From Andalucia godoyi And28 (Eukaryota > Protista > Jakobida), in NCBI GenBank assembly GCA_009859145.1, contig VRVR01000051.1, positions 2,549 through 66,548 on the forward strand: a DNA stretch of 64,000 nt, given 5' to 3'. Made by a program: the position numbers and the translations under genes. The number at the start of each line of letters is the position of its first letter. The stretch's first letter is position 1. Under the pieces are notes generated by a model, which was not told the DNA's origin, searched no databases, and saw only the letters and a list, made by a program, of their open reading frames with translations. Shown here piece by piece: positions 21,401 to 60,960 of the stretch.

Positions 21401-22100
21401 GTCAGAATACGAACAGCGTTTGCAGCAAAGCACGAAAAACAGAAGACAAGGAAAGGAAAACACAGGAAGGAAAAGGAAAAAGAAAAACAGGTAAAAGAAC
21501 CGCTGCCGCTTATTGCGATTTCATGACGCAATCTGAAGCGCACGTAAACAGAACCACTGCCACGCACCATGCCGCATGCGTTTGTTATCTTAACAGCTCT
21601 GTCACACGATGCCCGATTCGTTTCGCCCCATTTTGATCATGAAATCCCTATATAAACACGCCGCCGCGTTGCATTATGCATGTTGTTGGGTTGCAGCATT
21701 GATTATGGGTGATCAGCGATGATTATCCGTGGTTAGGTAATGTACAATGTAGACGAGCGCAGGAGGCAAACGCTCCGCTGCAGCATCGCCGGCTGTAGAC
21801 GAGACTTTTTTCCCCGAGGGAATTCCCAGCGGCTTTGAGCTGTTTTGCCATTACACACAGCACTTCTTCACACATTCACCCATTCTCGAGTCTTGCTGTC
21901 TTTTGTTCTTCTCGGACTCGTTTCTTCGCTCCTTCTTTTTGAAAATTCCTATTCACGTCTTTGTCTCCCGTTGCGTCTCTCTGCATTACTACCGCTTCAC
22001 TATAATTGTTATTGTGGTTACTTTACACTTTTTGGAGGAAGCCTAATCAGGATTGCTCAAACATTTTTACACAAGCTGAAACGAGCGGGAAGAAGAAGAA

Positions 22101-25100
22101 ATGGTCGTTGATCCTAGCCGCGACCCAATGCGACTGATTCGCAACAAGAGACTGCAGCTGGTGTCTTCTCTGGAGTCAAATACGTTGGTGGAGTTCACGG
22201 AGCATCCTTCACTTGTGACGCGCTTTGCAGTTCAAATTACAGCTGCGCCGCCTTCGCCGCTGATGTACATTGAGCGAATTGCGCAGATTCTCAAAGAGGA
22301 GTTTTCGTCTAAGCTTGTGGACTCTTATATCCATCTTTCCTCGAACGAGTTATTCTCAGTAACCGTCTTTCCCGAATTGTACTTGTCAAGATCAGATGCT
22401 TATCGACTAACGCAGTACGTGCAACTCAGACTGCTCATCGATGAACCGTCTACTCCGTGGGTCGAAATCGTGTCGGCGTCGTTGTTTTCAGAAGATGCAC
22501 AGATCCCTGTGTATTTGTCCAGCGTATTTGGATCGAGATTGACTCTGTCTGCCGTGTCTCCATTCATGGTCTCGCAACTGACTGTTCAAATGACGAGTGT
22601 CTCTTCATCCTCATCCTCATCTTCATCCTCACTATCAACGTCCGCGGTTGGAAGCAATGTATCCGACAATGCGGCTAGAAGCGAACTGTTCCCTAATTCA
22701 CTCCCTCTCAGCTCGGTCTTGTCTGTCAACTCCCAGGAGTACTCCTCCAGTCACGGGGAAGGAACCGGTGGCGATGCCATCGTTGCGCAGTTTCCGGGAA
22801 ATTCCCCTGTGCATCTGGTCAAGACTCCGTCGTTCTGCGCAGTCGATTTGTCCTCCGCCTCTGCTGCCTCTACGAACTGCCCGCGAGAAATCCTGCTCTC
22901 TGAACACCCGATAGATCACATGATGGTGTTTGCCCGGACGTGTTTGTATTTGTCCGACTCCGATGTAGATATTCTAAGAAAAGAGTCTCGTGTGTGCCAG
23001 CTTGCTGCGACACTAGATTCCAAAGCTGTTACGCTGTGGAATCGCTCGGAAACTTTGCCAAAGGAAACCACGAGCATTGTAGCTGTTGGATCGAGTTCTC
23101 AAGAGTCGCCGTACTCCCTCACAACATTCACGGGCTCGGTTTTCCTGGAGAGGATGTCGAGAGAGCTCAATACCCTGGCAGCTTTGCAAGGAACAAATGG
23201 AAACAACAGCACCACAGCTCATGCTGATTCCAATGAAGGAGCTGCCCGCAGATCAAGCGCAGCCTCGGCAGAGAATATGGGTGCGGATGAGTTTGTCCAC
23301 CTAGACAAGCTCAAGACTCCCAATCTTTCCATTGTCGAAATTCACGCAGGTTCTGACTTTTTGGTCATGAGAGATATCGTCGGTGCGGTGTACACGGTTG
23401 GTTCTCCTGCTTCCGGTCGCTTGGGGAGACCAGTGTCTGCGCCAAATCCTTCTGCAGATGTCTTATCACGAGTACTTGCCGTCGCAAATCCAGTTATCCA
23501 AGTTGTCGGAGGACACTCCCATACTCTGGTTCTGACGGATCAGGGTGAGTTGTGGGGCTGGGGTGCCAACTACCAAGGACAGCTCGCAACAGCGGTTGTA
23601 AAGGAACACCAGCAGGGGAGCGCGCGAATCATGTTGCCGGAGCTCCCTTTTGCTGCAGTTCCTCAAAGGATTCAGCTTCCGGCTTTCCCCGTGCATGCTA
23701 TCGCGGCAGGCGAGTCTTTCTGTGCCGCCATTGCCGGGCCGCGACGCGAAGTCTTTGCGTGGGGTGGCTCGTGGGGCCACCAGCCCCGCATGATTCCAAA
23801 GCTCGAAAAGGTGCGGTGGGTCTCGTGTGGCGGATCGACAGACAGCCCGTTTGTCGTCGCATGCCAAGATCTGCATCCGCGTGGCGATCTTTTGCACGTC
23901 TACGGTCCACCGTTTGGATGCGTGGGGCCCAATGCGCAAGCGCTGAAGATTGATCTGGAGTCTTCAGGTTCTGTCTTCCTGTCGGCGAGCTGCGGTGTCT
24001 CCAGAGGAATTGCGTTCTTTGTTGTCCACACTGCAGATGGCCTCATTTTCGTGATCAAGGCCAAGTCGTTGAAGGAAGGTGGAGATCCATTTGAAGTGAT
24101 TGAAGTGCCGTTCTTTGAAGCTGCGCAGATTCGCGTGTCACATCTCTCTTGTTGCAACACATTTGCAGCCGCGGTGTCGGATGACGGTGATGTTTATGTA
24201 TGGGGTGACTTTTTGGGATCTCCGTCGCCTTCGCCTTCCATTACGCCTAGACACTCCATGCCCAACATGCATGCGCAAAGCGAAGCGGACATGTCACACA
24301 CCACAGCAAACTTCGGCCTTGGAAGCCACAATCACGGCTCTTCATCGTCTTCCTCATCCGTGTCGACGCCGCAGTCCGCAGGAGCGAACGCCAAGGCTCC
24401 TACATCGCATGCACAAGGACAGCACACTCCGAATTCAGCACCGGTGCGCTCGCCATCGTATCACACGTCGTTTGGAACTTCGACAACCTCGACCCATACA
24501 GATCAGTGTGATATTTCATTGTTTGAACCGGCGCCTGTCAAGTTTTCGTCATTTGAAGGGAAGCACGTCCGCAAAGCATATGTCATTGATTCCTCGGAAT
24601 TTGGCAGAAGCATGATCGCTCTTTGCGAACGGAATCCATCATCGCGCTCAAAGCTGATTCGTCGATTTGTCAGTGACGAACGACTCTACAATAGTCGGCT
24701 GCGGAGACTCTGCGACCAAGTGTGGGCGTCGACTGGTAAGTATCTAAGCAACATTGTGCCAAATCACACTCTGCTTTTGCTGTCGTTGCAAGAGTGGTGC
24801 CATCAGTTCTACCTGTTTCCAAGGTTCTCATCTGTGTTTTCACGGTTCTCCCGGAAAATCGCAGTCGCCCACCGAGATTTTGTGCTCGCAAGAAACGACC
24901 TGAAATCATTCATTGCATCCCATTCCGCAATTCACCGCATGGCGTTCTACGAACATTTCTTTTATCAATTGCTGAAAGTGACTCCGGTAGATCATCCGGA
25001 TAGACATGCCTGCAAAGAGGTGCTTGACTTTGTGTCGTCGTACTGCAAGTTCTTGTATTCGTCAATGGATCGATACTCGGGCCGTCATAACGATGTTGGT

Positions 25101-29492: not shown

Positions 29493-29835
29493 CTCGCAGA
29501 TTCTTCTTCTTTTGTTCGTCCCTCTGCGGGTCCTTTCGAGGATGCAGTCGTCGAATGAGAGAACTCCGCAAGTTTCTTCTGCAGAGTGCGGACGATTAGA
29601 GCATCGTTCGTTCGACGGGGCCATCGGGGATTTTGTGCCAAAACGGGGAAAATTCCCGGCTTTGTCTGTTGGTTCCTTAGTTATTTACTATGTTTTTGGT
29701 TCTTCGTTCGACGCGTTAAGCATCGTCTGTGCATCTGATCTTCTTTTCGTTTATGTACGCTGGACTCTGGAGTGCAGAGCGCGGACAAGTTCGAGGAAAA
29801 AGGAAAAGGTAAAAGGTAAAAGAAAAGGCAAGAGG

Positions 29836-30885
29836 ATGTGGCGGGCTGTTGGAGTGCTCGTTGTCGCTGCATTGGTTCTAGCATCGTCGACCGCGCCAAC
29901 GTACTTGTTCTACGACGAGTTTGACAGGCTTGATTTGCGCGTTTGGAAGCCAAAGGTGACGATGGACGGCGGAGGAAACGGCGAGTTTGAGGTTTACTTG
30001 AACAATCGGACGAATGCGTATGTGAGGAATTCGGTGTTGTACATTAGACCAACTTTGCTGTCGGACGCTCTTGGCGAAGGCAACATCGAGGCTGGATTCA
30101 CGATGGATCTATGGGGTGAAGATGTGAACGTAGGCTGCACGTCGAACTGGAACGGCGGGTGCGTCAAGTCTTCGCAGTCTGCGGGTCTTATTCTTCCTCC
30201 TATTCAATCTGCCTCGCTGCGGACAATTGACTCGATGAGTTTCCGGTACGGGACAATGGAAACCCGAGCAAAGCTGCCAAGGGGCCAGTGGCTGTGGCCT
30301 GCAATTTGGCTCTTGCCGAAGTGGGGTCAGTATGGAGGATGGCCCGCATCTGGAGAAATCGACATTATGGAAGCCCGCGGAAACCTCGGGGTCAAGGAGT
30401 TTGGATCGACTCTGCACTGGGGACCGATGGGCGGACAGGATCCATGGTGGAAGACACATCAGGACTTCCAGTTGCCCAACGGCGGGTCTCTTGCAGACGA
30501 CTTCTACGTCTACGGGCTCTCCTGGAACTCGACTGGCATTGAAACGTACATCTACGGAGACAATCTTGCAAAGCACACAGTCCTCGACGTCTCATTTGCA
30601 GACATTCAGTCGTTTTGGGATCTCGGAGGATGGGAGTCGACGTATAGCAATCCGTGGGCTGGGAATGAGCCTTGGGCACCGTTCGACCAAGAATTCTACA
30701 TTATTTTAAACGTTGCAGTTGGAGGCACTGGCGGATACTGGAGCGATGGATACGACAACAAGCCATGGAACAACAGCGATCCACTGGCGATGAACGCCTT
30801 CTGGAAGGCTCGAAACGAATGGTATTTGACTTGGAATGGTGAAGACGCTGCACTTCAGATTGACTGGATCAAAGTCTGGCAGTGA
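29836..30885 (+). CDS. Secreted GH16 beta-1,3-glucanase (beta-glucan-recognition-protein type)
   Basis: Signal peptide; catalytic WPASGEIDIMEARG, LPRGQWLWPAIWLLP, PFDQEFYIILNVAVGG and LQIDWIKVWQ. Confidence 0.93.
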   Translation: MWRAVGVLVVAALVLASSTAPTYLFYDEFDRLDLRVWKPKVTMDGGGNGEFEVYLNNRTNAYVRNSVLYIRPTLLSDALGEGNIEAGFTMDLWGEDVNVGCTSNWNGGCVKSSQSAGLILPPIQSASLRTIDSMSFRYGTMETRAKLPRGQWLWPAIWLLPKWGQYGGWPASGEIDIMEARGNLGVKEFGSTLHWGPMGGQDPWWKTHQDFQLPNGGSLADDFYVYGLSWNSTGIETYIYGDNLAKHTVLDVSFADIQSFWDLGGWESTYSNPWAGNEPWAPFDQEFYIILNVAVGGTGGYWSDGYDNKPWNNSDPLAMNAFWKARNEWYLTWNGEDAALQIDWIKVWQ

Positions 30886-40455: not shown

Positions 40456-40553
40456 CGACACGAACAGGATTCGAACCTGCGCGGGAAATCCCAATCGATG
40501 ATCTAGTTGAAATGAATTCTAGTCGAACGCCTTAACCGCTCGGCCATCGTGTC
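40456..40553 (-). tRNA. trnS-AGA: tRNA-Ser(AGA) with a 17-nt canonical-position intron
   Basis: GACACGATGGCCGAGCGGTTAAGGCG-TTCGA-CTAGAA-[TTCATTTCAACTAGATC]-ATCGAT-TGGGATTTCCCG (long variable arm)-CGCAGGTTCGAATCCTG-TTCGTGTCG, followed by a T-run. Confidence 0.93.
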
Positions 40554-43808: not shown

Positions 43809-44798
43809 CTACGAGTCAACGTAGATGGCGCAGAACGGGGACATGTGTTCAAACTTTGGAGTTCTCCAGTCGGGTCCGAACACGAGTTTCAGAGAGCCTT
43901 CGATATCTTTCTGGACTCTCATTTGGCGTCCTAGACAGACATTGCCCCACGTGAGCCCGGCGAGGAACTCATCGGTGACTCCTCCGAAGCCAAACAGGTC
44001 AATGATCTTTGGCTCCCCATCTCTCTCGTAATACTGCGGTCGCACAGGCCAGTTACCCTCGTCAAACCGCACTGCGATCCCTGAGCCTCCTCGCAGCACC
44101 TCAAACTCGAATCCCGCAGCCGCGAGAACCTTCATTGCCGCACCTACATCCTCGATGCGCATCCCGAGGTCCAGATCGTGCTCCCACGGTATCGGGAATC
44201 CGGGGTGTCGCCCATAAGCAAGAAGCGAGCCTTGGACCGCCCACGTCTTGATTCCTGCAGCGTCAAGCACCGCAGTCACCTGCCCGCCTCGCTCGCACAT
44301 CAGCTCATGGTATCCGCGCGGATAGGCACACCACACATGCCACAGCATGAGCGACTTGGCAGCCAGCACAATGCCAAGCACCAGCGCGAGGACCATCGAC
44401 ACCTTTGCATTCCGCTGCAACAGCGCCGAGAATGAGGACAGCCGAGAAGCAGACACCAGTCCCTGCGGGGCCGTCGTGCAGCATCGCTTGTAAACGTAAA
44501 CAGGAAGCAGCAGCACGAACACAAGGATGCAGGAAATCGTCGTAAACACAGACGCAACCATCGCTGCCGCCGAAGACTTGTTTGACGAATGTGCGTGAGC
44601 ATGATGGGCGTGAGCGGATGCAGAAGCCGATGCGAGATTCGGCATCGTGAACACATGACTTGAAAAAAGATGGACAAACGTCATCGGGAGGAACAACATG
44701 CTCAGGACCGCCGGATACGGACTGAACTCGCGCCAAAAGTATGAGAAGAACACGCTGTTGAACAAGAGCAACAGAAACAAGAGACTCCTACTCAACAT
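43809..44798 (-). CDS. Membrane-anchored LicD/fukutin-family nucleotidyltransferase
   Basis: TWAVQGSLLAYGRHPGFPIPWEHDLDLGM, IIDLF and C-terminal FGPDWRTPK, with N-terminal hydrophobic segments. Confidence 0.8.
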   Translation of the reverse strand: MLSRSLLFLLLLFNSVFFSYFWREFSPYPAVLSMLFLPMTFVHLFSSHVFTMPNLASASASAHAHHAHAHSSNKSSAAAMVASVFTTISCILVFVLLLPVYVYKRCCTTAPQGLVSASRLSSFSALLQRNAKVSMVLALVLGIVLAAKSLMLWHVWCAYPRGYHELMCERGGQVTAVLDAAGIKTWAVQGSLLAYGRHPGFPIPWEHDLDLGMRIEDVGAAMKVLAAAGFEFEVLRGGSGIAVRFDEGNWPVRPQYYERDGEPKIIDLFGFGGVTDEFLAGLTWGNVCLGRQMRVQKDIEGSLKLVFGPDWRTPKFEHMSPFCAIYVDS

Positions 44799-45222: not shown

Positions 45223-45483
45223 ATGCTGGATTTGTGTCCGATACTGGAAGACGACTTGTCGATCGTGTCGTTTTCGGATCTTGATGTTCTTGACTTGCGA
45301 GGCGTTTCGACAGTGTCTGGGCTGTCCGAGTTCAACACGGTCGGTACAGCGACAACGCGCGTCCTGCTCGACGAGTGCACGCTTCTGTTCACCCGGTCCA
45401 ACACTGTGCAAAACAAGAAACCACAATCGCAACCGCAACCGTCGCTGCTCAATAGCACCGACGCATACGACAGTTTATCAACA

Positions 45484-45527
<44 letters not shown>

Positions 45528-48500
45528 TGGTAGTAGTAGTAGCGGTAGTGGTAGTGGTAGTGGTAGTGCGTCGCTCGACTTTAGCGCAAAGAGTCGGATT
45601 TCCCAAAGTAATGTGCTGATGCGACTGCTGCCTGCAGTGCACTTATCGCGGTTGTCGCTTGCAAAACTCGTTCCTGCGCCCTCGCTGCTGGAGCTTTTGG
45701 AGAATATCCCGTTTGCATTTCCAATGCTGCAGTGCTTGGATCTGTCCAACACGCCGCTTTCCGCACAGTATCTGACGGCAGTCGCTGCGGCAGTCGCTCC
45801 ATACTCGGCAGTCTCGCATGCGGTTGGAGTCCAGGAACTGTGCTTAGCGGGTTGCGAAATTGATCCAAAGGGTTGCAAGGCGTTCGTCGATGCCGTTTGC
45901 GCGGGCGCGCAGGACTCGGCGCTCCGCGAAAGATCTTCCACCACCACCACCACCACCACCGCCAGTGCGGCCGCCAGTCTCAGCGAAGGACTTCGCGAGA
46001 ATGCGGCAGACGCCTCGGTAGACGCCGCAAGTTCGGCTCGGCTTGCGAATGCCAAGCTTGCACTGCAAATCCTGGATGTTTCTGGGAATTATCTGTCGGC
46101 ATCATCGCTACTCATTCTGTCGGCGGCCTTGCCACCGTCGTTGAAGACTCTCAACGTGGCGAAAAATCCGATCCGAGACTCGGCAAAGTTGGATGCTGCT
46201 GCCGCGGCTTTGGGATCGCTTCCAAACTTGGAGGTCCTCTGTCTGGGCGGGACGATGATGTCCAGCTCGCTGGGCAGGCTGCTCATGATCATAAGTGAAC
46301 TCGGAGCTGTTGCCCGCAAGCAATTTGGGACGTATGCATTATCCACCCTCGACCTGACAAATTCAAAAATGTCTGAAAAGTGCTTTGAAGGACTCTCCTC
46401 GTTGTTGATAGCAGGTGGAGTGCGACTGTCAACATTGATCCTGAATCACATTGTGTTGGACGAAGACGCCTGGGTTGCGTGCCACCAATTCTTCAAAAAC
46501 GCAATCTCAGCGAATACCTTCCTTCGGGTTCTGGAGATCGATAACGTGTTTCCTGCTTATCCATCCATGTTTCCCCAGATGAAATCGCATCAATTGGCCC
46601 TCAGCTTGCCTGCAGAATTTGAGAATGATCCGCGAAGCGCAGTATATGACGGTGACGACGTAGACTTCCTGGTGAGGGAGTTGCTTGCGAGCATTGCGGT
46701 TTCTCCGTCGTTGCAGTCTGTATCGCTGAATGCAAATGGGTTGCATGATGGATACATGGATTTACTGGAACATTTTTGTTTGAAAAAATCCTCTGTGCTC
46801 AAGAAACTGCATGTTGCGCACAATTTCTTGACTAGGTTTCCCTTCGTCGGCGGACCTTCGAAACCCTTGCTGTCCATTCAAAACTCGGCCCCAATGCCCG
46901 ACTTTCCTCGACTGGAGTCGTTTGATTACTCGAAGAATCCAGTCATGTTGACGTCGTTTGCAGTGCAGCTGCCGGTTGTTCCAACATCAACCATTCCCGT
47001 TTCTGCTTCCTCTGCGAAATTGCCGACAAACACCAGTGCGCAGTCCTTCTCTGGAACGATCACAGATGCGTTTTTGGCGACGTTTTTGCCGCACGCTCCT
47101 GGTTTGAAGGAACTGCAGCTCTCCGGCTTGCCAGAAGTAACAATGCCGTTATTGGCGAACATGATTGGATTGTCTGCCATCGTTGGACTGAAGATCGACT
47201 GTTCCTCCTCCGTGGACCAGTCATTGGCCGTGTGCTTGAAGGATCGCAGCGATATGGTTTACGTGAATGGACTGAATCACATCTCGGAAATCACTGCTTC
47301 GTGGCACACCATTGTTGCTCCTTGGAAGTTCTTTGAGTCTCCCTCGAACATTCGGTTCGCCTCTGCTGCTGTTTTCCAGCGTGCTGTCTCCCGATGCATG
47401 CAGACAACCATCTTCCAAGCCTCTCCGCTGTTACTGCAACACGGATTCTCGTTGGGTGCGGCTCTTTCTGCACTGCGGTCGACGCTTGTGGTTCTGGATC
47501 TTTCCGATTGCAGAATTACGGACGAAGTGTTCAGCCGTGAAGTCCTGGGACACATTCCCCATCTTTCGAGTTTGTTGAAGTTGCGCCTCAAAGGCAACTT
47601 GCTCACTCTCGCCTCCATGAAGAAACTGTGTCCTGCCATGGAAAACACGGGCATTACATATGTCTCCCTCAATGTGTCGTATAACAAGCTGGATCTCGAA
47701 GGTCTTGTCTTCGTTACCCAAACGGCTCATAAGTTTTGTCGTAATCTGACAATTGTCCACGATGATATTTTTTCTCCAGCAGCAGCAGCTACAACAACAA
47801 CAACGTCGTCGTCGTCGTCGTCTTCTTTTGGTACTGGTGTTTCCAGTGCGTTCTCTCCTTCTGCGCAAGCTTCAATGAGTCGGATGATCGACATGCTGTT
47901 GCAAATCATGAATCGGCAAGACAGGCATCCCCTTCGATCCTTTTGTGGCATCAATTTTGATCAAGTCACCGCAGTGAATCGCAAAGAATTGACCTTCCGG
48001 CGCTTTTCATCTCAGTTTATGGCCGACATGTATCTTGGACTTGAAGAACGATTGGCGCCGACCACATTGGCGAATATTTGCACTATCGAGTTCGCGAATT
48101 CGTCGTTGTCCCGGTACTCCTTCGGGATCGTTGTCGGCCAACTCATCTGGAAGTGCGAAAACCTCAAACAACTGATTTTCGATAACTGTACCTTTGATCT
48201 TGATTTCTGTCGTGCACTGCAAGAGTACAGCCCCCCTTCGCAGTTGGATCGAGTGGCGTCGCAATTCAACAAGAGTGTGTTTTCCGAGTTTAAGAAGTCC
48301 ACTCGCAAGCCATGTGCCCTCGAATTTCGAAGCTGTCTTGTGCCGACCTTCTCGTTTTTGCTGAACATCAAGCTGTTTTCACTAAAAGAATTGTCCGTGA
48401 TGGACTGGAAGCGGGCCTTGAACGTCGAGGAGGTGGATGTTGGTGGCCCCTCACCTGAAGATTCCAGACCGCTGGAGCTCAGCACTGCGGACATTGGCGA

Positions 48501-51500
48501 TGTCATAGAATCGGAGTTTGCTTCTTCGTCGCTACCTTATTCTGCATCTCATCGTCGAGAATCGACAGATCCGATGATTGAAGTGATTCGATCCATCATC
48601 AATTGCCATGCACAAACGCTGAAACGGATGAACCTGTCAGGATTTCGCAGTTTGTTGAGCGGGGATTCTGAAACGACGTTTGCGACCATTGCTTCGTGTG
48701 AAAAATTGGAAGAACTGGCTGTGGACGCTACCCGCATCGGCAGGGACTCTTTCATGGCCGTTGTTCCGTTGCTCCTCCAGTACTGCTCCTCATTGCGAGT
48801 GCTGTGCGTATCGGGATTGGATCACGGTCAGAACTCCGGAAACGCTCTGTCGCTTGCTCAAGTCCGTCTGCTGCTCGCAGAAGTCCGACAACACAATTCC
48901 ATTCGGGTTCTCGCAGGTGTCTTTCCCGACGATCCATCGTCTGTTGAGTGGAAGAGGCTTTCGCTCGAATTGCGCTGCAATGGAACTCCCGTGATTGACG
49001 TTTCCTACTCTACGGAGGAACTGCAAGACTCTTACTTTGCATTGTGTATTTTGAGATCGATCTTCAAGCGGCAAGCTTGGTTGAACATGTTCGACATCAT
49101 CGAGAGGTTACCAGCAGCGACGTTTCCGTTGTGTCTTCCGCTGATATTTTGTACGGATCATGTTTCCTTTGTCCAGCAATCCGCAAAGGCAACAAAGGCA
49201 TTTGTGGAACGGGTCCCTGTGTTAGTGAACAAGTTCCCAGGTCCGTGGGCATTCGACCTGCAGAAGCTGCAGTTGAATCTGCAAATTGAAGCGGTGCCGG
49301 CCAAGTTGGCGGAGTCAATGATTGTCAGTTGCAACCCTTTGATTCTATCTCACGAGTATTGGTTCGTGGAGCGGGAATTCAGAGACTATGCAGACAAGTT
49401 TTGCAGTTCCAATGGTGTCGACATCTCCCTGTCTGAAATCTATCCTTTTGAAGACGGGTTTTTTGTGGCTCCCGATGATCCTCTTCTTGTGGGAATCCGC
49501 AAGGGGCTGGTCGCATGGGTCGCAAAAGTGTGCAGCGATTCGGAGATCCTCATGCGAACTAAAGTCGTGTTTGACTGTGTTGCCTACATATTCTCGCGAA
49601 CTGCAGGCGGGACGCTGGTGACTCCCTCTCTGAACTCTGCCCCAGGGCTCACTCTCACTCTCGCTTCTTCCTTGCCGGCGAACAGCCAGAGTCCCATGAC
49701 GGATTCTTCCTCTGTCCGGATGCTGCAGTCCCTTCTGGAGCGCGAGCCGCCGTTTGAACAAGCGTGGGTACCCTGGATCGTACGGTCTGTAGGCGTTACG
49801 TATCTCACACAAAGCGGGTCGTCGCTGTTTCACATGACTGCAAAACATGGTTGCACTGTTGTGCTTCTTGAACTATGTGATAGGCTGCATGCGTCATCCG
49901 CAGCTGGCGCACCGAATCTCAGTGCGTTCGATGGCAGCAAGGAATCGACCCTTGCGTTTCTTCTGCGTCGCAATGCCGCTGGCTTCACTGCCAGAGACCT
50001 GACATGCCCAAGGGATGACTGCCGGGAGATTCATGACAAGTTGTTGGCGGAGGAAAACAGAATGTGGGAAACAGCGGCCGATGTTCACGATCAGTATCTA
50101 GAACAAGCTGTGCGGCAGGCGCATTGCGTGCTGATCCGGACGATCCGAGAAGCATCTGCTGGAGAAGAAGCGTTGCTGGCTAGATTTCGAAGCAGCATGA
50201 TGCAGAAATGGCTCACCGTTGACCGATGTCCGCATCCCCATCGGCCAGACCTCGAAGTGTGGTGCATTCGAATGATTCCCTCCCGGGCGGCATTCCTGCA
50301 TTCCACTCTTCCGTCCAACTCCTTTGTCATCGGCCGCAGCGCTTCTCTTGACAACGCTGCAGATCTGAAGTCGCGAGATGCACAAATGACCAATACCTCT
50401 CCCTTCCCGTCTCTTCCTTCCCTTGTGCTGCAGTCGATTGTGCTAGACGTCATGTGCTCAGTGATTCAGACGTCTGTACCTACTCTTCTTCCACAGGGCT
50501 ACTGCCCAAACACGATTTTGGAAATGCTGGAAACCAAGCATTTCAAGGCTGCCTTCTGTCCGCATGAGCCTGCAGAAGTATCAGCCCTCTCGCACGCGTG
50601 GCTCGCGTCTATGGAGCCTCTGACCTCTCTTTCGTCTCGAGAATTTCTTCGCGAGACGCCGTATCATGTGCACGGCGGGCTGCAGATTCTGCGCGACTAT
50701 TTTGGAGAGCATATTGCAATTTATCTGTTGTTCGGCTGCACTCTGTTCTCGCATATTCTGCGACTGTTAATGTTTCTTCTGCTGTTTCATGGCTTCTGCT
50801 GGTACTATGACGTTTCTCGGCATGTCTCTGTCGTGGTGAATTCGTTTGCAATGATTTTTGGAGGAAGGATGCTGTTGACGGCTCTCAGGCAGAAGAGTTC
50901 CGAAGCGTCCTTTGCGTGGGAGGTCCTGGACTATGAAGACGCTCTGGAGCAAGTTCGGCCGCAATTTCGGGGTTTGAAGGGCCTGGTGTCAGTGAATCCG
51001 ATCACAGGGGAAGCAGAACCATATTTTCCATCGTCGAGAAGGCTCCTTCGCGTCCTGTTTTCTGCGTTGATTGCTGGAGGCTTCATGGTTATCGCCGGTG
51101 CAATCAACATCCTCAGGACACACTATGCTCGCAAACTGGAGCTCCTGTCCTCTGCGACCAATGTGGAAGCTGAGGCTGTGTTCTATACGAGGTTGCAAGC
51201 GTCTCTTTCTGTCGGATATGCGATCTCCGTGATCATCATGGCCGGCCTCTATCGGTCGGTCATGATGAAGCTGACGGACTTTGAGAATTGGCGAGCGCAG
51301 TCGCAGTGGGTATCTTCGCTTGTCCTCAAGAACACTGCGTTTTCCTTTGCGAACTCGTACGGTGCCTTGCTGCTGTTCTTGTATCATGGCTACGGCAACG
51401 TTGACACACTGCTCAGCGGCCTGTCTTCTGGCTTAACAAGCTTGCTGATTGCTCGGTTGGCATCGGGACCTGTTATTGAACATGTGTTTCCGCTGCTGCA

Positions 51501-52368
51501 ATTCCGCATTACGGCTCTCCTTTCGCGATCCTCCGTTTTCGGTCGGAAGAAAGACTTTTCTCCCACGTCGTCGTCACTTGCATCCGCATCCCCGTCATCC
51601 AGAGCGTCTTCCGTCGATCGCCAAGGATGGTCAAAACGAAAGGAAAAGTCAGGAAACAAGGCGGCGGGACAGGCAGCAACGTCCAGGACCCATGCTGCAG
51701 GATCCTCTCTTTTCCACCAGCTGCTGATGTCTTCCAAGTCCCCCATGAAGAACGTAGAAGACCGCCTGGACGAGTCGTCTCGGGTGTCGTATGGCGATCA
51801 TTTGTTCTCCGAGTATGCAGATCTCGTTGATGTTTTTGGGCTGCTGTTCTTGTTCGCCGCCAGTGCACCGGGCGCTGTTGCCTTGGCAGCGGTGTATATT
51901 GGCGCCCAGATTAAAGGCGACGTTTTCAAGTTCACGTTTGTCAACCGAAGAACGCAGCGCAGAATCACATCTGGAATCGGAGTGTGGCTTCCGGTGCTTG
52001 AGAACCTATGGATCGCGTCGATCTTTTCGAATGCATTCATGATTGCACATTCTCTCCGGCCGTTTCTAAGTCACATTTGCACGGTCCTCCAATCCGGGAG
52101 GTTCCTGTTTGACGCTGCGCAGATTTATCTGTTGGGAAGCGAAGCCCCGATTGTGCCGCTTGCTGGCTACTGTTCCGATCAGAGTGCTGCGCAAGCAGAT
52201 GTGTCCATTGTCTCATGGATGTGGATCCTCATCGTTGTGTTTTTGCTGTCAACCCTCATGGTGTTTCGCAATCTTGCCGTGGGATCCCTTCGCCACTTGG
52301 CCCCGTGGGTTCGAAAAGAAATCTATCGACAACGACTCCGTCAAAAAGCCAGTCGAAACGTTGCTTAG
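45223..52368 (+). CDS. LRR (RNI-like) + ankyrin-like + anoctamin/TMEM16 fusion protein
   Basis: Many LxxLxLSxNxL units; ankyrin-like SLFHMTAKHGC...RNAAGFTARDL; anoctamin motifs ILRDYFGEHIAIYL, VRPQFRG, LTDFENWRAQSQWVSSLVLK, EYADLVDVFGLLFLFAASAP and DVFKFTFVNRRT...GIGVW. Confidence 0.88.
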
Positions 52369-53754: not shown

Positions 53755-54151
53755 GTCCTTCCTCTTTTCCTTTTTTCTTTTTCTTTTTCTTTTTTCTTTT
53801 ATCTTTTTTCTTTTATCTTTTTTTCCTTCGGTTTTTCCTTGCTTTAATTGTTATTCTTCGTTAATGTTTTCTTCTGCTGGCCTTTCTTCCCGCTCGGTGA
53901 AGCATTGCAGAGAAGCAGAAAGTGCGGGAAAACGAATCACTCAGACGGCGTTTGCTGCAGTGATGAGTTGAGACTGGAGACTTGACACAAGAGAGACTTG
54001 AGACTTGGGACAGCGCGCTCTCCCAAACCTCTCTTGCTCTCGGCTGGTGTAAAGAGAGAGTGTTTGTAAGAGAGAGTGAGAGAGAGAGAGAGTGAGTGTG
54101 TGTGTGTGTGTGTGTGTTCGGAGAAGAGACGAGGAAGGGCGGAATGACGAG

Positions 54152-55024
54152 ATGGTGGACAGCAGTGATGAAGTACGAGCGCTGAGTCGTCGCGGCATTG
54201 TTTGCGGACCCGGGGAAACGGTGCTTGCGTTTGCAGCGCGCGTAAAGCACCAATTGGGACTTACAGCAGATGAGATTCGGTTGCATCCGAGTTTTTCGTG
54301 TGCGTTCTCGGAGTGTGCGGTTGTGCATGCATGGGCGCTTTCTTCGTACAGACAGGCACTCGCATTGCTGAACGCGAGGCTGGATGCGAGTCTGGATGCG
54401 CTGGATTGGGTTTTGGTAGTGGTATCGGGTGCGGGGCTCGGCACCGGTATGATGGGTGCGTGTCATGAGCGCATTGACTTTCCGGGACGCGAGGGCGTTC
54501 GGCTCGTGTTTATCCAGCTCCATCCAACATGCTTCTGCAGTCCTGCGTTTGAATGCACAGTGATTGCACACGAGTTTGTGCATGCGGTGCGATCGCAGCT
54601 TGTTGGCGATGCGGACGACGACGATGACGAAGTGTTTGCGTACCAGCTGTCGGATTCAAGGCTGGAAAGGTGGGTTGGACCACTCCATCGATCTTGGTTT
54701 CGCCATCTGGTTGTCGGGTCGTTTGCAGTTGCGCTGAATCGAAATGTGCTGCGTGCGGCGTTTGTGGGGTCGTTGGTCGTAGATGCCGCTCATGCGTACA
54801 AGCTGCGTGGACTGCTGGCGCGTGTTGCGTCACGTCTGGAGGCTTCGGGAATGCCATGTTCCGGTTTACTTTTCCGCATGTCAGCAACCGAATTGCAGAC
54901 GTTCGGTGCGCTGCTCGAGTCAGGCGTTCCTGCTGGACTTGCATTGTCACGAACAGTCGGCGAGAACAACCCAGCCAGACTCCAAGCGCTTGTCATGTTT
55001 CTGCGTACGCCAAGCAGGCTGTAA
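54152..55024 (+). CDS. HExxH...E zinc-metallopeptidase-like protein resembling a conserved hypothetical family of Chlamydiae
   Basis: VIAHEFVHAVR followed by DEVFAYQLSDSRLERWVGP, N-terminal RGIVCGPGE and C-terminal LLFRMSATEL. The family resemblance is from memory and unverified. Confidence 0.65.
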   Translation: MVDSSDEVRALSRRGIVCGPGETVLAFAARVKHQLGLTADEIRLHPSFSCAFSECAVVHAWALSSYRQALALLNARLDASLDALDWVLVVVSGAGLGTGMMGACHERIDFPGREGVRLVFIQLHPTCFCSPAFECTVIAHEFVHAVRSQLVGDADDDDDEVFAYQLSDSRLERWVGPLHRSWFRHLVVGSFAVALNRNVLRAAFVGSLVVDAAHAYKLRGLLARVASRLEASGMPCSGLLFRMSATELQTFGALLESGVPAGLALSRTVGENNPARLQALVMFLRTPSRL

Positions 55025-55165
55025 AGCAGGCTGTAGGCGAAGACGATGACGGAGAGAAAAAACAGAGCTTCATAATGGAAAAATGTACACACACACGCAC
55101 ACACAAACCTACATACATACATACATACATAAATACACACTGGGTGCCCAGCGAGGTGGGAAGAG

Positions 55166-58100
55166 TTAAAGAACGCCAATACATTGGATGCTGACGTCGA
55201 CAGTTCCCGAAGACGTCCATGCAGCATTTGATCCGGAGGCCGGCGAATACAAGTACAGATCAACATAGGAGATGGAGGGATCGACTTGAAGAAAGAACGG
55301 GGCCCCGGAGAGTTGTGCAGTGCAGATCGGAGCTCTGTGAAATGCACTGGCAAAGGATATTCGCATGAGATTCGAGGCAACGGACGGCGTGGACATCAGC
55401 AAATTCGCCCCGGCCCCCCATGCGGACGGAGTCCCTGCGACGTAGGTTCCGCTGGTGAATCTGCCGGCTGCTGACGCTAGCGACGCAGTCCGCGAAGCAT
55501 GCGAGGCCGGATTCATGATCAGCGTGTGTGCTGCAAATCCGCGAGTGGAAGAAAGCGTGGATGACATTTGCATCTTCGAGCTTGTTCGCAGGGATCCTGA
55601 ACCGGAGAGAGTGAGATGGCCGCGGCTGAGGTGAAGTGCTGAAGTCGGACTGGCGGTGCCAAGACCAACTTTCGGAGACCCAATACCACTCACGACCAAT
55701 GACGGATCCACAGCGCCATCCGAGCCTGTCATCGCAAAACCAATTACACCTTGCGCTCCGGTAGAACGGCGGTTAAAAAGGAGCGAGGATGCGGCCGCCA
55801 ACCCCCAAAACGGTGTGCTTGTGTAAAAGGACGCCGTAACACCGTCGGCCGTTGGAATGGCAGAAGAAGGATCGTCGGAATGATAAAACAGCGTCGAGTA
55901 CGAACTGCGATTCAGCCATCCAGAAGAGCCTCCAATCGTCAGGGACTGTTGCACTCGCAACGAGTACACATCCACATCCGCAATAGGATTCGCATTTCCG
56001 TTTGTGGAAATTCGGCCATCGGACGCTCGGATGATCAACACCAACTGTCTCGCGCCGGAAGACTGCAATGTTTCGTTGTGGCTCCCGATAACCCCTGCAG
56101 TGGACGCAAATGCCGTTGTTCGGGGAGACGGACCGGACTGCCGAAAGAAGACGAAGTCATTGGCGGCATCCATCATGACGTCAAAGTTGTTTCCAAGAGA
56201 ATTATTGCTCTTCCACGTGACACGATTTCCAAGCTGGAAATCAGGTTCCACATAGCTATTCGCCAACACAGGGCGCTCAAGTCGGCCGTTTCCGCTGACA
56301 TCCAAGATATGCGTTGCATACAGTCCCGCAGATGCATTCAGATTCACAGACACGCGACCGAAACCATGAATCGTAAGAGCTGGGACAGGTATCCCAGACT
56401 GCACATTCTCAAACACGATTCCGCCCGAAACATTCTTGTTGGCTTCTGATAAACGAAACTCCATCAAATCGCCGAGTATGTCGCCGAGTACGTACCCCGC
56501 TGCGCTCGAGACGTTAAAGTAATCGCGAATTCTCCAAACATCAAAAATCTTGTTTCCGTGCGACGACCGTGTAATCAAACCGGAATCGGCGAGTCGACTT
56601 GTGTTGACAAAAATGACATTACCGGCAATGTGCAGCTTCTTCAAAGGCAGCATCCGCCCAATGCCGAAATTCCCAGAGATTGCCGCATACGACAACACAT
56701 GCTGGGCACCTCCGTACTGGCCGAAGTACACGACCATGGAATTGTCCGAGATCGACGCATTGACCCGCAACTGGACAGACGACGTATTTCCAATCACAAA
56801 CGGGAAATTCGTCTGCAGCCTTGGCGACTGATTCACAGAGACATTAACGCCCACCGCCCCTGTTGAATCGATGCGAAGTGTCTGCAAGAAGGAGACATGA
56901 CTTGCCCGCCCCACGGAATCGAATGCAAGGCTGAAGAATCGGCCAAATGAAGTGGTCTGGCTTCGTCCGACAAACCCCATTTCTGGGCACTGAATCGCAT
57001 ACAGGTCTGGCCGAACAGACAAGACTCCAAGGTCCACATTTTGACCCTGAACTGTCAGATTTCCAAAAACGTTCACACTTGCTCCCTGTACACTGCCAAG
57101 AACCACAGTATCCAACAACAATGACGGGGACGAAACTTGCAAGATGCTCGCCACAGCAAACGACGTCGCCGACGCGCCAGACGCAACAACGTTGCCAGTA
57201 ACAGACAGGGTTTTCGATAGCATCGCAGCGCCAACATTGATGCTCCGGGTAAGGAGGTCGGTGGAGACAAACCCATTTCCGGTGACAGCCAGAATTCGAC
57301 CAGTTGAAACGGAATCTCTCACCACACAATCTGCGAGTACGTCGATCGCACCCGATACATTGAAAACACCTCGGAAGACTGCATCTCCCCCTGCACGAAC
57401 GACGCCGTTCACTCCCAACGTTCCCGTGATGCTCGTAGACAAATTGAGCACAACAGCAAACTGGGACACAAGCCGGCTCGTCGTCACAGATGCTGCGGCC
57501 TGGACTGTCACAGGAGCTTCGATCACAGCAGATGCTGCCGTCAACGGGCCAAGCACGTACATGTTGTCCGCAAGGGATGCGCTCGACTGTACCAATAGGT
57601 TGCCGGTAGCAGTCATGGAACTTCCGAAAATCGCAGGAGCAGCGGCATTGACGCGAGAAGACGTAACCGGACCTAATGTACAGTTTTCCACGACAAACAG
57701 CGTCAGCAACGACACTGGCGACGACAAAGTCACCAGTTGATTCAGAACTGCGCTGGAGGCAGACGTCGACCCGATCACGACAGCATTCTGAGAAACAAAG
57801 TTCCCAAACATTGCGAATCCCTGAATTTCAAACCCAGCCGAGGCGGCGACGTCGTGAAATTTACAAACGTCCGAGCAAGAAGCGGAAACGTTGCCAAGAA
57901 CGACAACAGAAGACTTGAAAAGACTGGGAAGATTTGGAGATGAAATGACGAGCGCTTCCGAATCCAGTATGCCATTTGTCAAGGATACATTCGACTGAAC
58001 CACGACGTTCCCGTCAGCAACAACAGAGCCCAGCAACGCGACAGAACCAGACAAGCTGTTGCAGGCTGTCATGCCTCTAAAATAGGCCGACGCTGCATGA

Positions 58101-60073
58101 AGGTCCTTGGAAAGGAAAGCACTGCCACCGAAAACAGCATTCCCGTTAGAGATGATACCATGAACAAGCAGCGGTCCTCCAATCACAACTGCCGGTGAGA
58201 ACATTGCTGCACCCGACACCGCAATAGAGTGATTCAAAACAAGCGCTTCCATAGCAAAAGAGCTGTTGATGGCTAATTCACCCATAATCAAACCATTTCC
58301 CAACACCGCAAGTCTCCCCGACACGGCTCCGGAATGCAAACGCACATCGCTAAGAGAATCCATCGATCCAAACAGAGCGAATTCCGCTGCATTGGAAATG
58401 ACATCTCCAAATACAGAGAGGTTCGTGGTGTTCATCGCAAACACGTCGACGCTTTGCAAAAAGGAGACGTTCTGCAACTGCAGTGCCCCAGACAGCTGCA
58501 GTGCAGAACTTGCAACAAGAGATCCATTGAAATCCGAGGTGGCAATGTTTTCGAGGCCAATAAAACGGGCGGAAGTGGATGCAAATATATTCTGAGAACC
58601 CAAAGTCTGAAGACCGAGGACCGTTAGATTGCGATGAAGCTGCACCGATCCAGACACGATGAGGTCCCCCTGCACCTGCCAGGAGTTCGACACGAACACA
58701 GAATGTGCAAAAGCATCCTGGGTCACAGATGTGCTTCTGTTCGCATAGGCATCGGCATCAACCTCTAAGTTATGCATCACCTGCAGGGTTCCAACAGACA
58801 TATTCGACGCAACAGAAACGTGAAGTCCCACAGACGCGTTGCCGAGACTTTGAACGGCACCGCTGAGTTTCATTGCGCTCGTGGCCAACAAGTCACCAAG
58901 AACTGTCGTGTTTGACAGTGACACCGTAGAGCGAAACAATGTCTGTTCAACGAAGAACACATCCGCGGCTTGGACAACAAGACGCTCAAGGTTCACGGCG
59001 AATGCATCCAGACTGGGAGCAGTTCTGAATGTTGGCGGCTGCGATTGTCTCGTAATATTTAGCGATCCACCCTCAAATATGTGGATGGCGCGCGCGACCA
59101 AAGCGCCATCGTGATCACAATTGACGGCATCCAGATTACCGGCTACGCGAACAAGAGACCCATGGAAGGATGACAGTGTGGAGCTGTCCGTTGACAACGC
59201 CCTGGCAAGACCAGACGAGGGGGTGTAGATCGAAATATTGCCTTGAAGCGTCGACAGTGACGCACTCAGGAATGACCGCAGCTCCGCCACCCGAACGGGA
59301 CCGTGGACCGTGGATCGATCGGACACTGTCGCCAGCGAGCGAACATGAAGCTTACGCATGTGCGATACGGTTTCCATCGGCTCAAGTAAATCAATGCGCT
59401 CGACGGTTCCAGAGCCTGAAATCGCCAACGAATGTACAGTGGACGGCGAACTGGATATGAGAAGCGCTCGAGAGCCGAGAAGAGTGAAGCCTGTCGCGTG
59501 GATGCCTCCACGCAGTTGCAGCGGTGCTTGCAGAACGGAAATGCCACGGACTGACAGATTTTGCTGGACGACGACATCCCCGTTGGCAAACACTCCGCCA
59601 CTCGCGAACGTCCCCTTCGAACTGCGAAATGCTGAAACTGTCAGTGATTTGGCCCCCGTGAGCGAACCGGCAATCGCAACCGACCGCAGGAATTGGACCG
59701 GAGCCTCGATTTTCCGCACCGCAATCGCATGCAGGAAGAATATGAACACCGAAACACAAACCGCAAGCAACATCGCGTAGAGCGCAAGCCCAATCACGGC
59801 TCTTCGTGAGGGTGCATAGGGATGGATAATTGGGAACACCTCCCTTTGCAGAGTGCCGTCCAGTGCAAACTCATCGGCTTCGGCAGCCGATCGAGATATA
59901 CGGTTCAGAGGAACAATCGGCGGCAGCGAGCACACGATCTCAGGCGATGCCCCGTGCTCTAACAGATAGCTCCGCACCTGTCGGTCCTCCTCGGAAAAGT
60001 CAGCAAGTGTAAACGGTTGCGAACCCACCGACGGCATCACTTTGGCATTCTTCGGTGACGAAACTTGCAGCAT
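55166..60073 (-). CDS. Type II membrane protein with a long beta-repeat, phage/viral tail-fibre-like ectodomain
   Basis: Single TM helix (AVIGLALYAMLLAVCVSVFIFFL), ~900 aa of GxLxVxG-type repeats, GNFGIG/KVGLGTASPTSALHL repeats and C-terminal RISFASAFHRAP...IQCIG. ATG at 60073. Confidence 0.8.
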   Translation of the reverse strand: MLQVSSPKNAKVMPSVGSQPFTLADFSEEDRQVRSYLLEHGASPEIVCSLPPIVPLNRISRSAAEADEFALDGTLQREVFPIIHPYAPSRRAVIGLALYAMLLAVCVSVFIFFLHAIAVRKIEAPVQFLRSVAIAGSLTGAKSLTVSAFRSSKGTFASGGVFANGDVVVQQNLSVRGISVLQAPLQLRGGIHATGFTLLGSRALLISSSPSTVHSLAISGSGTVERIDLLEPMETVSHMRKLHVRSLATVSDRSTVHGPVRVAELRSFLSASLSTLQGNISIYTPSSGLARALSTDSSTLSSFHGSLVRVAGNLDAVNCDHDGALVARAIHIFEGGSLNITRQSQPPTFRTAPSLDAFAVNLERLVVQAADVFFVEQTLFRSTVSLSNTTVLGDLLATSAMKLSGAVQSLGNASVGLHVSVASNMSVGTLQVMHNLEVDADAYANRSTSVTQDAFAHSVFVSNSWQVQGDLIVSGSVQLHRNLTVLGLQTLGSQNIFASTSARFIGLENIATSDFNGSLVASSALQLSGALQLQNVSFLQSVDVFAMNTTNLSVFGDVISNAAEFALFGSMDSLSDVRLHSGAVSGRLAVLGNGLIMGELAINSSFAMEALVLNHSIAVSGAAMFSPAVVIGGPLLVHGIISNGNAVFGGSAFLSKDLHAASAYFRGMTACNSLSGSVALLGSVVADGNVVVQSNVSLTNGILDSEALVISSPNLPSLFKSSVVVLGNVSASCSDVCKFHDVAASAGFEIQGFAMFGNFVSQNAVVIGSTSASSAVLNQLVTLSSPVSLLTLFVVENCTLGPVTSSRVNAAAPAIFGSSMTATGNLLVQSSASLADNMYVLGPLTAASAVIEAPVTVQAAASVTTSRLVSQFAVVLNLSTSITGTLGVNGVVRAGGDAVFRGVFNVSGAIDVLADCVVRDSVSTGRILAVTGNGFVSTDLLTRSINVGAAMLSKTLSVTGNVVASGASATSFAVASILQVSSPSLLLDTVVLGSVQGASVNVFGNLTVQGQNVDLGVLSVRPDLYAIQCPEMGFVGRSQTTSFGRFFSLAFDSVGRASHVSFLQTLRIDSTGAVGVNVSVNQSPRLQTNFPFVIGNTSSVQLRVNASISDNSMVVYFGQYGGAQHVLSYAAISGNFGIGRMLPLKKLHIAGNVIFVNTSRLADSGLITRSSHGNKIFDVWRIRDYFNVSSAAGYVLGDILGDLMEFRLSEANKNVSGGIVFENVQSGIPVPALTIHGFGRVSVNLNASAGLYATHILDVSGNGRLERPVLANSYVEPDFQLGNRVTWKSNNSLGNNFDVMMDAANDFVFFRQSGPSPRTTAFASTAGVIGSHNETLQSSGARQLVLIIRASDGRISTNGNANPIADVDVYSLRVQQSLTIGGSSGWLNRSSYSTLFYHSDDPSSAIPTADGVTASFYTSTPFWGLAAASSLLFNRRSTGAQGVIGFAMTGSDGAVDPSLVVSGIGSPKVGLGTASPTSALHLSRGHLTLSGSGSLRTSSKMQMSSTLSSTRGFAAHTLIMNPASHASRTASLASAAGRFTSGTYVAGTPSAWGAGANLLMSTPSVASNLMRISFASAFHRAPICTAQLSGAPFFLQVDPSISYVDLYLYSPASGSNAAWTSSGTVDVSIQCIGVL

Positions 60074-60239
60074 CTCTCGTTTAATCGCACAGCGGTGCTC
60101 CGCGGAATCATCCAAGAAATGCCCCTTTAATCAATTCTTCTACGAATACGACTACTCCTAATAATGATGCTGATGGTCATTGGATGAATTGACTCTGGCG
60201 TCCGGGATCGAAGACCGAAAAATTGTTGAAACCACCACC

Positions 60240-60888: not shown

Positions 60889-60960
60889 TGCGCATGCGGG
60901 GAGTCGAACCCCGGTCATAACCTTGGAAGGGTCACATACTAACCGTTGTACTACATGCGC
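60889..60960 (-). tRNA. trnG-TCC: tRNA-Gly(TCC)
   Basis: GCGCATG TAGTACAACGGTTAGTAT G TGACC CTTCCAA GGTTA TGAC CGGGGTTCGACTCCCCG CATGCGC A, with a downstream T-run. Confidence 0.95.

Follow-up and report, generated by a model that had tools for sequence, protein, structure and literature searches.

A putative membrane-anchored, sequon-enriched fibre protein with phage- and bacterial-type modules in the jakobid Andalucia godoyi

The jakobid Andalucia godoyi And28 carries, in a window of 64,000 nucleotides (the whole stretch of DNA analysed here: assembly GCA_009859145.1, contig VRVR01000051.1, positions 2,549 to 66,548 of the forward strand), a gene for a protein of 1635 amino acids (aa) that is probably a type II surface fibre adhesin of prokaryotic fibre ancestry, bacterial or phage. 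A fibre adhesin displayed at the cell surface, or in a topologically equivalent lumen, is the best-supported account of the features predicted from its sequence. Its components are known; what is new here is their combination in a eukaryote behind a signal anchor, together with an enrichment in N-x-S/T sequons and a restriction to jakobids. This restriction corresponds to two full-length proteins and one environmental fragment among 1.8 billion representative proteins.

Results

Relatives in eukaryotes

The main homology search was carried out with HMMER, using aa 1000-1635 as the query and the library of 1.8 billion representative proteins. Just two strong relatives were recovered. One of them (P0003, E = 1e-52) is ANDGO_01802 of A. 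godoyi itself, a protein of 1707 aa annotated as 'hypothetical protein'; the other (P0002, E = 3e-67, 42% identical) is a C-terminal fragment cut by the end of a metagenome contig. BLASTP aligns aa 77-1635 of the fibre protein collinearly with ANDGO_01802 up to the end (E = 3e-75), with an identity of 26%, or 30% in a global alignment. The plan of ANDGO_01802 is the same, with a Pro-rich tail, one transmembrane (TM) helix, a stalk, four capping-loop motifs, a tip and 43 sequons. No paper on the motif or on ANDGO_01802 came up in a literature search. Word-indexed protein searches with the full protein, its C-terminal 636 aa or the tip alignment returned the query alone or nothing; their lists were saturated or missed relatives and are not evidence of absence. 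Neither internal repeats nor a paralogue within the window were detected by BLAST.

C-terminal fibre modules

The region of about 480 residues between aa 1011 and 1494 contains two canonical and two decayed loops of the type GxVGIGTxxPxxxLHV (Table 1). The units quoted in a preliminary description of the locus, made from the sequence alone, could all be located: GNFGIGRMLPLKKLHIAGNV and KVGLGTASPTSALHL are the canonical loops, and RISFASAFHRAP...IQCIGVL closes the protein. Alignment with MAFFT defined a module of about 95 aa, present in two copies (a and b) per jakobid protein, with the consensus …DGFRxxY…F……LxFEKTD……GxIxFxxTGSDGxxEPALVIRGxGxVGIGTxxPxxxLxV. Module b shares identical residues with its bacterial counterparts in P0009, P0011, P0024 and P0027 at 23-29 of 91 aligned positions (about 30%).

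The 23 other HMMER matches (E = 2e-10 to 9e-4) are of three kinds: proteins with many copies of GN(V/L)GIGTxxPxxKLHVxGN (P0004, P0005 and P0006), proteins matched over about 95 residues (P0009, P0011 and P0024), and P0020, which is matched in the tip alone. The strongest match outside jakobids is P0004 (E = 1.9e-10, 23 matched stretches), which also has matches to tail-fibre PHROG families. In this protein of 2307 aa (L004 691-7614), the NNLGVGTATPLQRLHVEGN unit recurs about 40 times in nearly identical form, and the end is tail-collar-like. Its contig (58% GC) also encodes DUF5901, a helicase and an AAA clamp-loader protein of phage-like type; the source is probably a large phage. At their C-terminal ends, P0005 carries a phage tail-collar domain and P0006 an S74 chaperone.

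The bacterial proteins P0009 and P0011 were matched with E-values of 1e-5 to 3e-5 (1.3e-5 for P0009). P0009 is encoded in an ordinary stretch of bacterial chromosome on a metagenome contig, directly upstream of an S74 gene. In addition, a scan of GTDB found the module in a protein from a metagenome-assembled genome of Bacteroidota (L006 36-2111), where it is chained to YadA-like head repeats, GIGT capping loops and a C-terminal S74 domain; the module thus travels in mosaic trimeric adhesins. P0011 matches structurally characterised Bdellovibrio fibres in the PDB: Bd2133 (8ond, 3e-5), Bd3182 (8ojn) and Bd1334 (8oml, 8on4). A profile of the three jakobid sequences matched Bd3182 directly (8ojn_C, E = 3.5e-4) in two stretches in which both canonical loops are aligned; each stretch terminates in a VG(V/I)(G/N)T(T/A)AP…(L/I)HV loop, and GNFGIGRMLPLKKLHIAGNV pairs with the second loop of Bd3182.

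The HMMER search, the PDB profile and the module alignments support homology of the C-terminal 600 aa to fibre modules of the phage and bacterial type, in line with the fibre ancestry proposed earlier. A complete lack of viral or prokaryotic homologues, which had been named as an outcome that would speak against that proposal, is contradicted by the prokaryotic relatives found. Pfam detected no S74 domain (PF13884) in the protein, and the SDxxxK motif is absent from both this protein and ANDGO_01802, so that we assign it to a non-S74 fibre design. A single-sequence AF2 monomer model of aa 1000-1635 was unusable (pLDDT 32).

The tip domain

The last 141 residues align with P0002, ANDGO_01802 and bacterial P0020 at 26-36% identity and contain two invariant cysteines (APIC… and …QCIG). 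P0020 (L003 853-1758), the sole sequence relative of the tip outside jakobids, is a small bacterial protein encoded on a contig of 68% GC; it consists of a signal or TM segment, a TPR-like region, a 20-residue poly-Thr linker and the tip. Its gene is neighboured by a vWA-associated-type gene and by one for a protein with Cys-rich repeats.

The preliminary description had recognised in the terminal domain an xTFPxAFxxxP...WxAxG signature, which would make it a tail-collar (PF07484), gp53 or H-lectin domain. This identification was not borne out, as no Pfam family was matched by any of the four tip sequences at E <= 10, and an H-type lectin phage protein ranked only 43rd (TM 0.37) in the fold search. 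An AF2 model built from the four-row alignment (pLDDT 72, pTM 0.71) predicts an all-beta fold of eight strands. Foldseek found nothing for this model in the PDB at E <= 0.001. Against BFVD, the same model matched virion structural, tail-fibre, tailspike and minor-tail proteins of cyanophages and of enterobacterial and actinobacterial phages, as well as a Catovirus protein, with a best E-value of 3.5e-4 and query-normalised TM values mostly of about 0.4-0.55 among the better matches. The suggested likeness to phage fibre ends is supported in this way by a model of moderate confidence, and hints, without proving it, that the tip was drawn from a pool of phage-type distal fibre domains.

The stalk

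Residues 119-1010 are rich in S, V, A, L and G, and their hydrophobic residues and glycines recur with a period of about 5.6-6 residues and its multiples of 12 and about 17-18. This periodicity suggests a triangular beta-helix of the hexapeptide or bactofilin type. The '900 aa of beta-repeats' announced earlier are therefore confirmed as far as residue composition and periodicity are concerned; copies at the sequence level were absent by BLAST, and what exists instead is a degenerate structural periodicity. In ANDGO_01802, which is less decayed, the 6/12/18 periodicity is very strong.

The collinear stalk of ANDGO_01802 matches Pfam Bactofilin (E = 1.8e-14, 54.2 bits vs a cut-off of 27.9), and the protein matches phrog_5070 (2e-23), phrog_7964 (5e-18), the tail-fibre family phrog_4549 (7e-15) and phrog_1469 (5e-10); the tail-protein family phrog_3269 matches it at the last capping loop. 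Unlike this relative, the protein under study was not recognised as a member of Bactofilin (PF04519): Pfam gave no match at E <= 1 for the full length and nothing credible at E <= 10 for six overlapping pieces. It has matches of its own in the stalk to phrog_5070 (E = 1.6e-4) and phrog_7964 (E = 0.03) when a piece of 301 aa is scanned (E = 0.0032 in the full-length scan), at aa 385-483; the same two families are the top matches of ANDGO_01802 at the aligned position. A PDB sequence search with the protein alone gave just a left-handed beta-helix acetyltransferase at chance level. The placement of the stalk in the class of bactofilin-like and phage tail-fibre beta-helices consequently holds through ANDGO_01802 and, weakly, in the protein itself.

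Membrane anchor and sequons

The coding sequence is complete and intronless, and an identical gene model of 1635 aa is present in the protein database. Serine accounts for 14.4% of the residues, and V, A, L and G are abundant; K (1.1%) and C (0.7%) are scarce. The single TM helix of the preliminary description was readily found at aa 93-118, the sole strongly hydrophobic stretch, with a Kyte-Doolittle value of 2.75 (1.77 for the next best segment). The N-terminal tail that it reported as short also exists and, at 92 aa, is not especially short. The tail is not conserved in ANDGO_01802; the BLAST alignment begins at aa 77.

All 31 N-x-S/T sequons, close to the 30 or so previously counted by eye, lie after the TM helix, within an ectodomain of 1517 aa. 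Composition-preserving shuffles contain 16.3-16.6 +/- 3.6 sequons, with a maximum of 29 among 2000 shuffles. The corresponding z-value is 4.3 for this protein, 5.4 for ANDGO_01802 and 0.6 for the short fragment P0002. For the 25 other recovered relatives, which are prokaryotic or phage-like wherever the source was checked, it ranges from -3.3 to +1.8 and is centred below zero. Consequently, the excess is not a by-product of beta-helix repeats. Moreover, for 8 of the 31 sequons, ANDGO_01802 has a sequon in the same column of the alignment, whereas 0.8 would be expected. The TM anchor and a sequon excess confined to the two full-length eukaryotic members argue for the adaptation to the secretory pathway that had been suggested.

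The predicted signal anchor and the enriched, ectodomain-confined sequons are the features of a type II N-glycosylated surface protein. The sequon-free, long and hydrophilic tail, the lack of a signal peptide and the pair of cysteines in the tip point to an N-in/C-out signal anchor followed by a glycosylated, disulphide-bonded ectodomain. The 92-residue tail would then be cytoplasmic.

Table 1. Position of the fibre gene and of its predicted parts in the window
Feature	Residues (aa)	Coordinates	Strand	Remarks
Open reading frame		55166..60115	-	Open back to TTG at 60115; first ATG at 60073
Complete intronless coding sequence	1-1635	55166..60073	-	1635 codons; stop at 55166-55168
N-terminal hydrophilic tail	1-92	59798..60073	-	No signal peptide, no sequons
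Single TM helix (putative signal anchor)	93-118	59720..59797	-	Top 19-aa hydropathy window; equivalent helix in ANDGO_01802
Predicted beta-helical stalk, hexapeptide periodicity	119-1010	57044..59719	-	19 sequons; periodicity and collinearity with the ANDGO_01802 stalk
Stalk segment	385-483	58625..58921	-	Own matches to phrog_5070 and phrog_7964
Decayed capping loop GAVGVNVSVNQSPRLQTNF	1072-1090	56804..56860	-	Aligns with GSVGIGPGVSSAQGALHV of ANDGO_01802
Canonical capping loop GNFGIGRMLPLKKLHIAGNV	1134-1153	56615..56674	-	Most weak database matches align here (query positions 95-175)
Fibre module a (…FRLSEANKNVSGGIVFENV…ALTIHGFGRVSV…LDV)	1165-1263	56285..56581	-	Decayed loop; MAFFT alignment with module b and bacterial modules
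Fibre module b (…DG…F…LLFNRR…IGFAMTGSDGAVDPSLVV…KVGLGTASPTSALHL)	1393-1489	55607..55897	-	Contains the last capping loop
Last capping loop KVGLGTASPTSALHL	1468-1482	55628-55672	-	Canonical; inside module b
C-terminal tip	1495-1635	55169..55591	-	Predicted eight-strand all-beta; two invariant Cys; ends RISFASAFHRAP...IQCIGVL

Residence in the eukaryotic genome

The window is compact, essentially intron-free eukaryotic DNA with genes on both strands and a GC content of about 51% throughout. It codes, among others, for PPDK, an SLC13 transporter, an RCC1-MORN-VPS9 protein, an LRR-anoctamin protein, a PAQR/HlyIII protein and tRNA-Gly. These traits agree with those published for the genome of A. 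godoyi, which has about 20 Mb, mostly intronless genes, short spacers and neighbours mostly in opposite orientation (PMC7050145). The genes flanking the fibre gene (PAQR/HlyIII, LRR-anoctamin, PPDK and tRNA-Gly) are eukaryotic, its GC3 (0.556) is the same as that of its neighbours, and its relative synonymous codon usage correlates with that of 13 neighbouring genes at 0.85, the second-highest value. No viral genes were present among the annotated neighbours in the window, and no trace of a provirus was seen. The metagenome contig carrying P0002 (GC 52%) also encodes Q_salvage and L51_S25_CI-B8 genes, and its gene downstream of P0002 is homologous to the downstream gene of the A. godoyi locus and has the same convergent orientation; P0002 is thus an orthologue in a related environmental organism. 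Neighbours, codon usage and the syntenic environmental orthologue establish that the fibre gene is a host gene. An insertion of a provirus or giant virus was ruled out by the ordinary host neighbours and the host codon usage. A trypanosomatid origin of the window was rejected because both strands carry genes.

The convergent neighbour, at 54092-55024 (+), codes for a protein with an HExxH motif (IAHEFVHAV) and matches no Pfam family; in its metagenome relative, L001 1020-2087 (-), the motif reads LAHELVHLM. The adjacency of this gene to the fibre gene is kept in both organisms. On the other side, tRNA-Gly(TCC) lies about 0.8 kb upstream of the fibre gene, at 60889-60960 (-). Microsatellites, namely (CA)n, (CT)n and (TGTA)n, occupy the short spacers at 54060-54130 and 55080-55140, and a (GA)n run upstream of PPDK reads as KEKEKE in the mechanically listed open reading frame 17047-19947. 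Elsewhere in the window, the gene at 22101-27200 (+) encodes a protein of 1699 aa in which RCC1-like, MORN and VPS9 parts are combined; the architecture of this jakobid protein resembles that of alsin (ALS2). The one at 45223-52368 (+) encodes a protein of 2381 aa with leucine-rich repeats at the N-terminus and an anoctamin/TMEM16 domain at the C-terminus. A tRNA gene of 98 nt at 40456-40553 (-), detected by Rfam and not by ARAGORN, presumably contains an intron. Putative secretory or glycan-related genes are represented by 20183-21463 (-), whose product is hydrophobic at the N-terminus and carries an IPT/TIG domain, by the GH16-like 29512-30885 (+) and by the LicD-like 43809-44798 (-).

Discussion

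Comparison with known fibres

The closest architectural parallel is offered by the 'mosaic adhesive trimers' (MAT) of Bdellovibrio bacteriovorus, surface fibres in which a trimeric, intertwined beta-helix is divided into segments, each closed by a capping loop of the consensus V-G-G/N-pi-x-x-P-x-x-x-L (Caulton et al. 2024, PMC10769870). According to the same study, these fibres are related to those of K1F and T5 and carry either an S74 chaperone or one of various adhesive tips at the C-terminus, prey glycans are bound by at least one of the fibres, Bd3182 has a reported length of 550 A, and the same capping loop occurs in the structure of eukaryotic MYRF (PMC10769870). With Bd3182 and the non-S74 group, Bd2133 and Bd1334 (8ojn, 8ond, 8oml), the jakobid protein shares the predicted long beta-helix fibre and the VG(I/L)G..P...L capping loops, two in canonical and two in decayed form. 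Its predicted all-beta tip fits the swappable C-terminal beta-sandwich that takes the place of S74 in MAT proteins, and the owner of those fibres is a predator of bacteria. The differences concern the host, which is a eukaryote, the bactofilin-like hexapeptide stalk and the sequon enrichment. In architecture, the TM anchor with its 92-aa tail, followed by the stalk, stands where MAT proteins have a signal peptide and a conserved, beta-rich N-domain of about 130 aa, the comparison being one of layout and not of N-domain sequence. The tip also found no PDB match at E <= 0.001, the tip structures of Bdellovibrio being among the PDB entries.

The S74 fibres of phages (K1F endosialidase and the L-shaped fibre pb1 of T5) and of bacteria (L006) have the capping loop in common with the jakobid protein. 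The 95-aa module, situated in bacteria directly upstream of S74, the tail-fibre PHROG matches of ANDGO_01802 and the tip model add to this likeness. The jakobid protein differs in having neither S74 nor SDxxxK, in belonging to no virion or tail gene cluster and in its predicted membrane anchorage. As a precedent, MYRF is a membrane protein of eukaryotes that contains a phage-derived S74/triple-beta-helix trimerisation module; the MYRF module, however, cleaves itself and frees a transcription factor on the cytosolic side, whereas the jakobid protein lacks S74 and DNA-binding domains and its fibre would be the ectodomain. Finally, the 6/18-residue triangular periodicity is that of Bactofilin (PF04519) and left-handed beta-helix proteins, and ANDGO_01802 exceeds the Pfam threshold. 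The stalk of the protein under study has no Bactofilin match of its own, is about nine times longer than a bactofilin domain, and is predicted to be extracellular and not part of a cytoplasmic polymer.

Nature and origin of the protein

Several observations weigh against a trimeric surface adhesin. The protein has no Pfam match and its PHROG matches are weak, so that the argument runs largely through ANDGO_01802 and bacterial intermediates; outside jakobids, the matches rest on short motifs or 95-aa modules. Two of its four capping loops have decayed, and a bactofilin-like stalk could be a single-chain helix for which a trimer is not required. The likeness of the tip to phage proteins, with TM values of about 0.45-0.55, comes from a model based on four sequences and has no counterpart in the PDB. 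On inspection of the sequence, the charges flanking the TM helix leave the topology undecided. With three eukaryotic members found, this is a very small family, and what it does could be peculiar to it.

The preliminary description spoke of a domesticated viral fibre, and a donor among phages or protist-infecting giant viruses, with the protein possibly serving as a decoy or entry blocker, deserves consideration. Phage tail fibres are the best-known members of the superfamily, several tail-fibre PHROGs match ANDGO_01802, the strongest match outside jakobids shares its contig with phage-like clamp-loader and helicase genes, and the moderately confident tip model resembles phage proteins and a Catovirus protein. 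However, a 20-aa motif repeated 23 times inflates the E-value of that strongest match, the long and informative module alignments lead to chromosomal bacterial proteins, the only sequence relative of the tip outside jakobids comes from the 68% GC bacterial contig, and the locus lacks viral genes. A tblastn search with the C-terminal region gave no match in 50,697 phage records. Profile scans of IMG/VR (profiles A1 and A3), of JGI metagenomes (A1) and of GTDB (P0020) were likewise empty, the scans of these three collections being insensitive because they rely on one or two short degenerate patterns; the tip profile A2 was too variable for a pattern scan. A viral donor is thus possible, not favoured and in our view unlikely; the claim of viral domestication is unproven, and the donor may equally have been a bacterium. 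Contamination by bacterial DNA or an assembly chimera might be suspected, since the recognisable relatives outside jakobids are solely prokaryotic or phage proteins, and is practically negligible as an explanation: eukaryotic genes lie on both sides and have the same GC, GC3 and codon usage, the signal anchor of the protein is of eukaryotic type and its sequons are in excess, synteny is kept on an independent metagenome contig, and the A. godoyi proteome contains a second copy.

Other alternatives concern what the protein does and where. As a component of a coat, cyst wall or glycocalyx, the rod would be a glycan-bearing spacer or matrix with no specific ligand. The high and partly conserved density of sequons along the entire stalk would suit such a role, as would the protease resistance suggested by 1.1% lysine and the richness in S, T, G and A; the decaying capping loops could mean that a fibre-tip function has been relaxed. 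A purely structural role is a serious alternative, though in our view rather improbable, because it is in the tip and module b that the three eukaryotic proteins are most conserved (42% and 35% identity, vs 26% overall), which indicates selection on the distal end. It is very improbable that the protein is an intracellular, membrane-tethered polymer like bactofilins, or that its ectodomain faces an internal lumen such as that of a phagosome or extrusome. The Bactofilin match of ANDGO_01802 would be accommodated, the flanking charges would be no obstacle, and a lumen-facing binder of bacteria is plausible for a phagotroph. A cytosolic location, in turn, leaves unexplained the eukaryote-specific, position-conserved excess of sequons and the invariant cysteine pair of the tip, and the C-terminal modules are of an extracellular fibre type. 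These objections do not touch a position in a lumen, which in topology corresponds to the cell surface.

If the protein is, as we believe, a type II surface fibre adhesin, the internal hydrophobic helix would act as a signal anchor and direct the ectodomain into the endoplasmic reticulum, where many of the 31 sequons may be N-glycosylated. By analogy with phage and Bdellovibrio MAT fibres, three chains would join through the C-terminal modules into an intertwined beta-helix closed by the VGIGTxxPxxxL loops, and the hexapeptide stalk would extend as a rigid rod of roughly 30-100 nm. The stalk alone would measure about 24 nm if each chain forms its own helix with 18 residues per turn, and an ectodomain with the rise per residue of Bd3182, derived from the 550 A of that fibre, would have a length on the order of 100 nm. 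The beta-sandwich tip, with its putative disulphide, would bind a ligand; the most plausible one is a glycan on the surface of bacteria that the cell eats or adheres to. Binding of bacterial glycans is the most attractive function given the analogy with Bdellovibrio and the fact that jakobids eat bacteria. A plausible evolutionary scenario is the uptake of a prokaryotic fibre gene, from a bacterium or a phage, by an ancestor of these jakobids, followed by duplication and the gain of a TM anchor and of sequons.

Significance

Jakobids are important for thinking about early eukaryotes and, to our knowledge, little is known of the molecules by which free-living heterotrophic flagellates recognise bacteria. 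The architecture of the protein allows speculation that a receptor-binding fibre of prokaryotic or phage origin was taken over by a bacterivorous eukaryote and now serves it, anchored in the membrane and shielded by glycans, as a receptor for prey recognition, a counterpart of the MAT fibres of Bdellovibrio. We regard this extension of the adhesin hypothesis as tentative and somewhat doubtful, and the interest of the protein would be modest if it were merely a component of a coat. Nevertheless, it would be the second known case of eukaryotic reuse of phage-type fibre modules, after MYRF, and would illustrate clearly which features a surface protein of prokaryotic origin needs in the eukaryotic secretory pathway, namely a signal anchor and sequons. 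As a candidate receptor, it is built from modules whose structure and behaviour are understood in phages and Bdellovibrio. If it does recognise prey, the choice of bacteria by early-branching phagotrophs would become directly testable.

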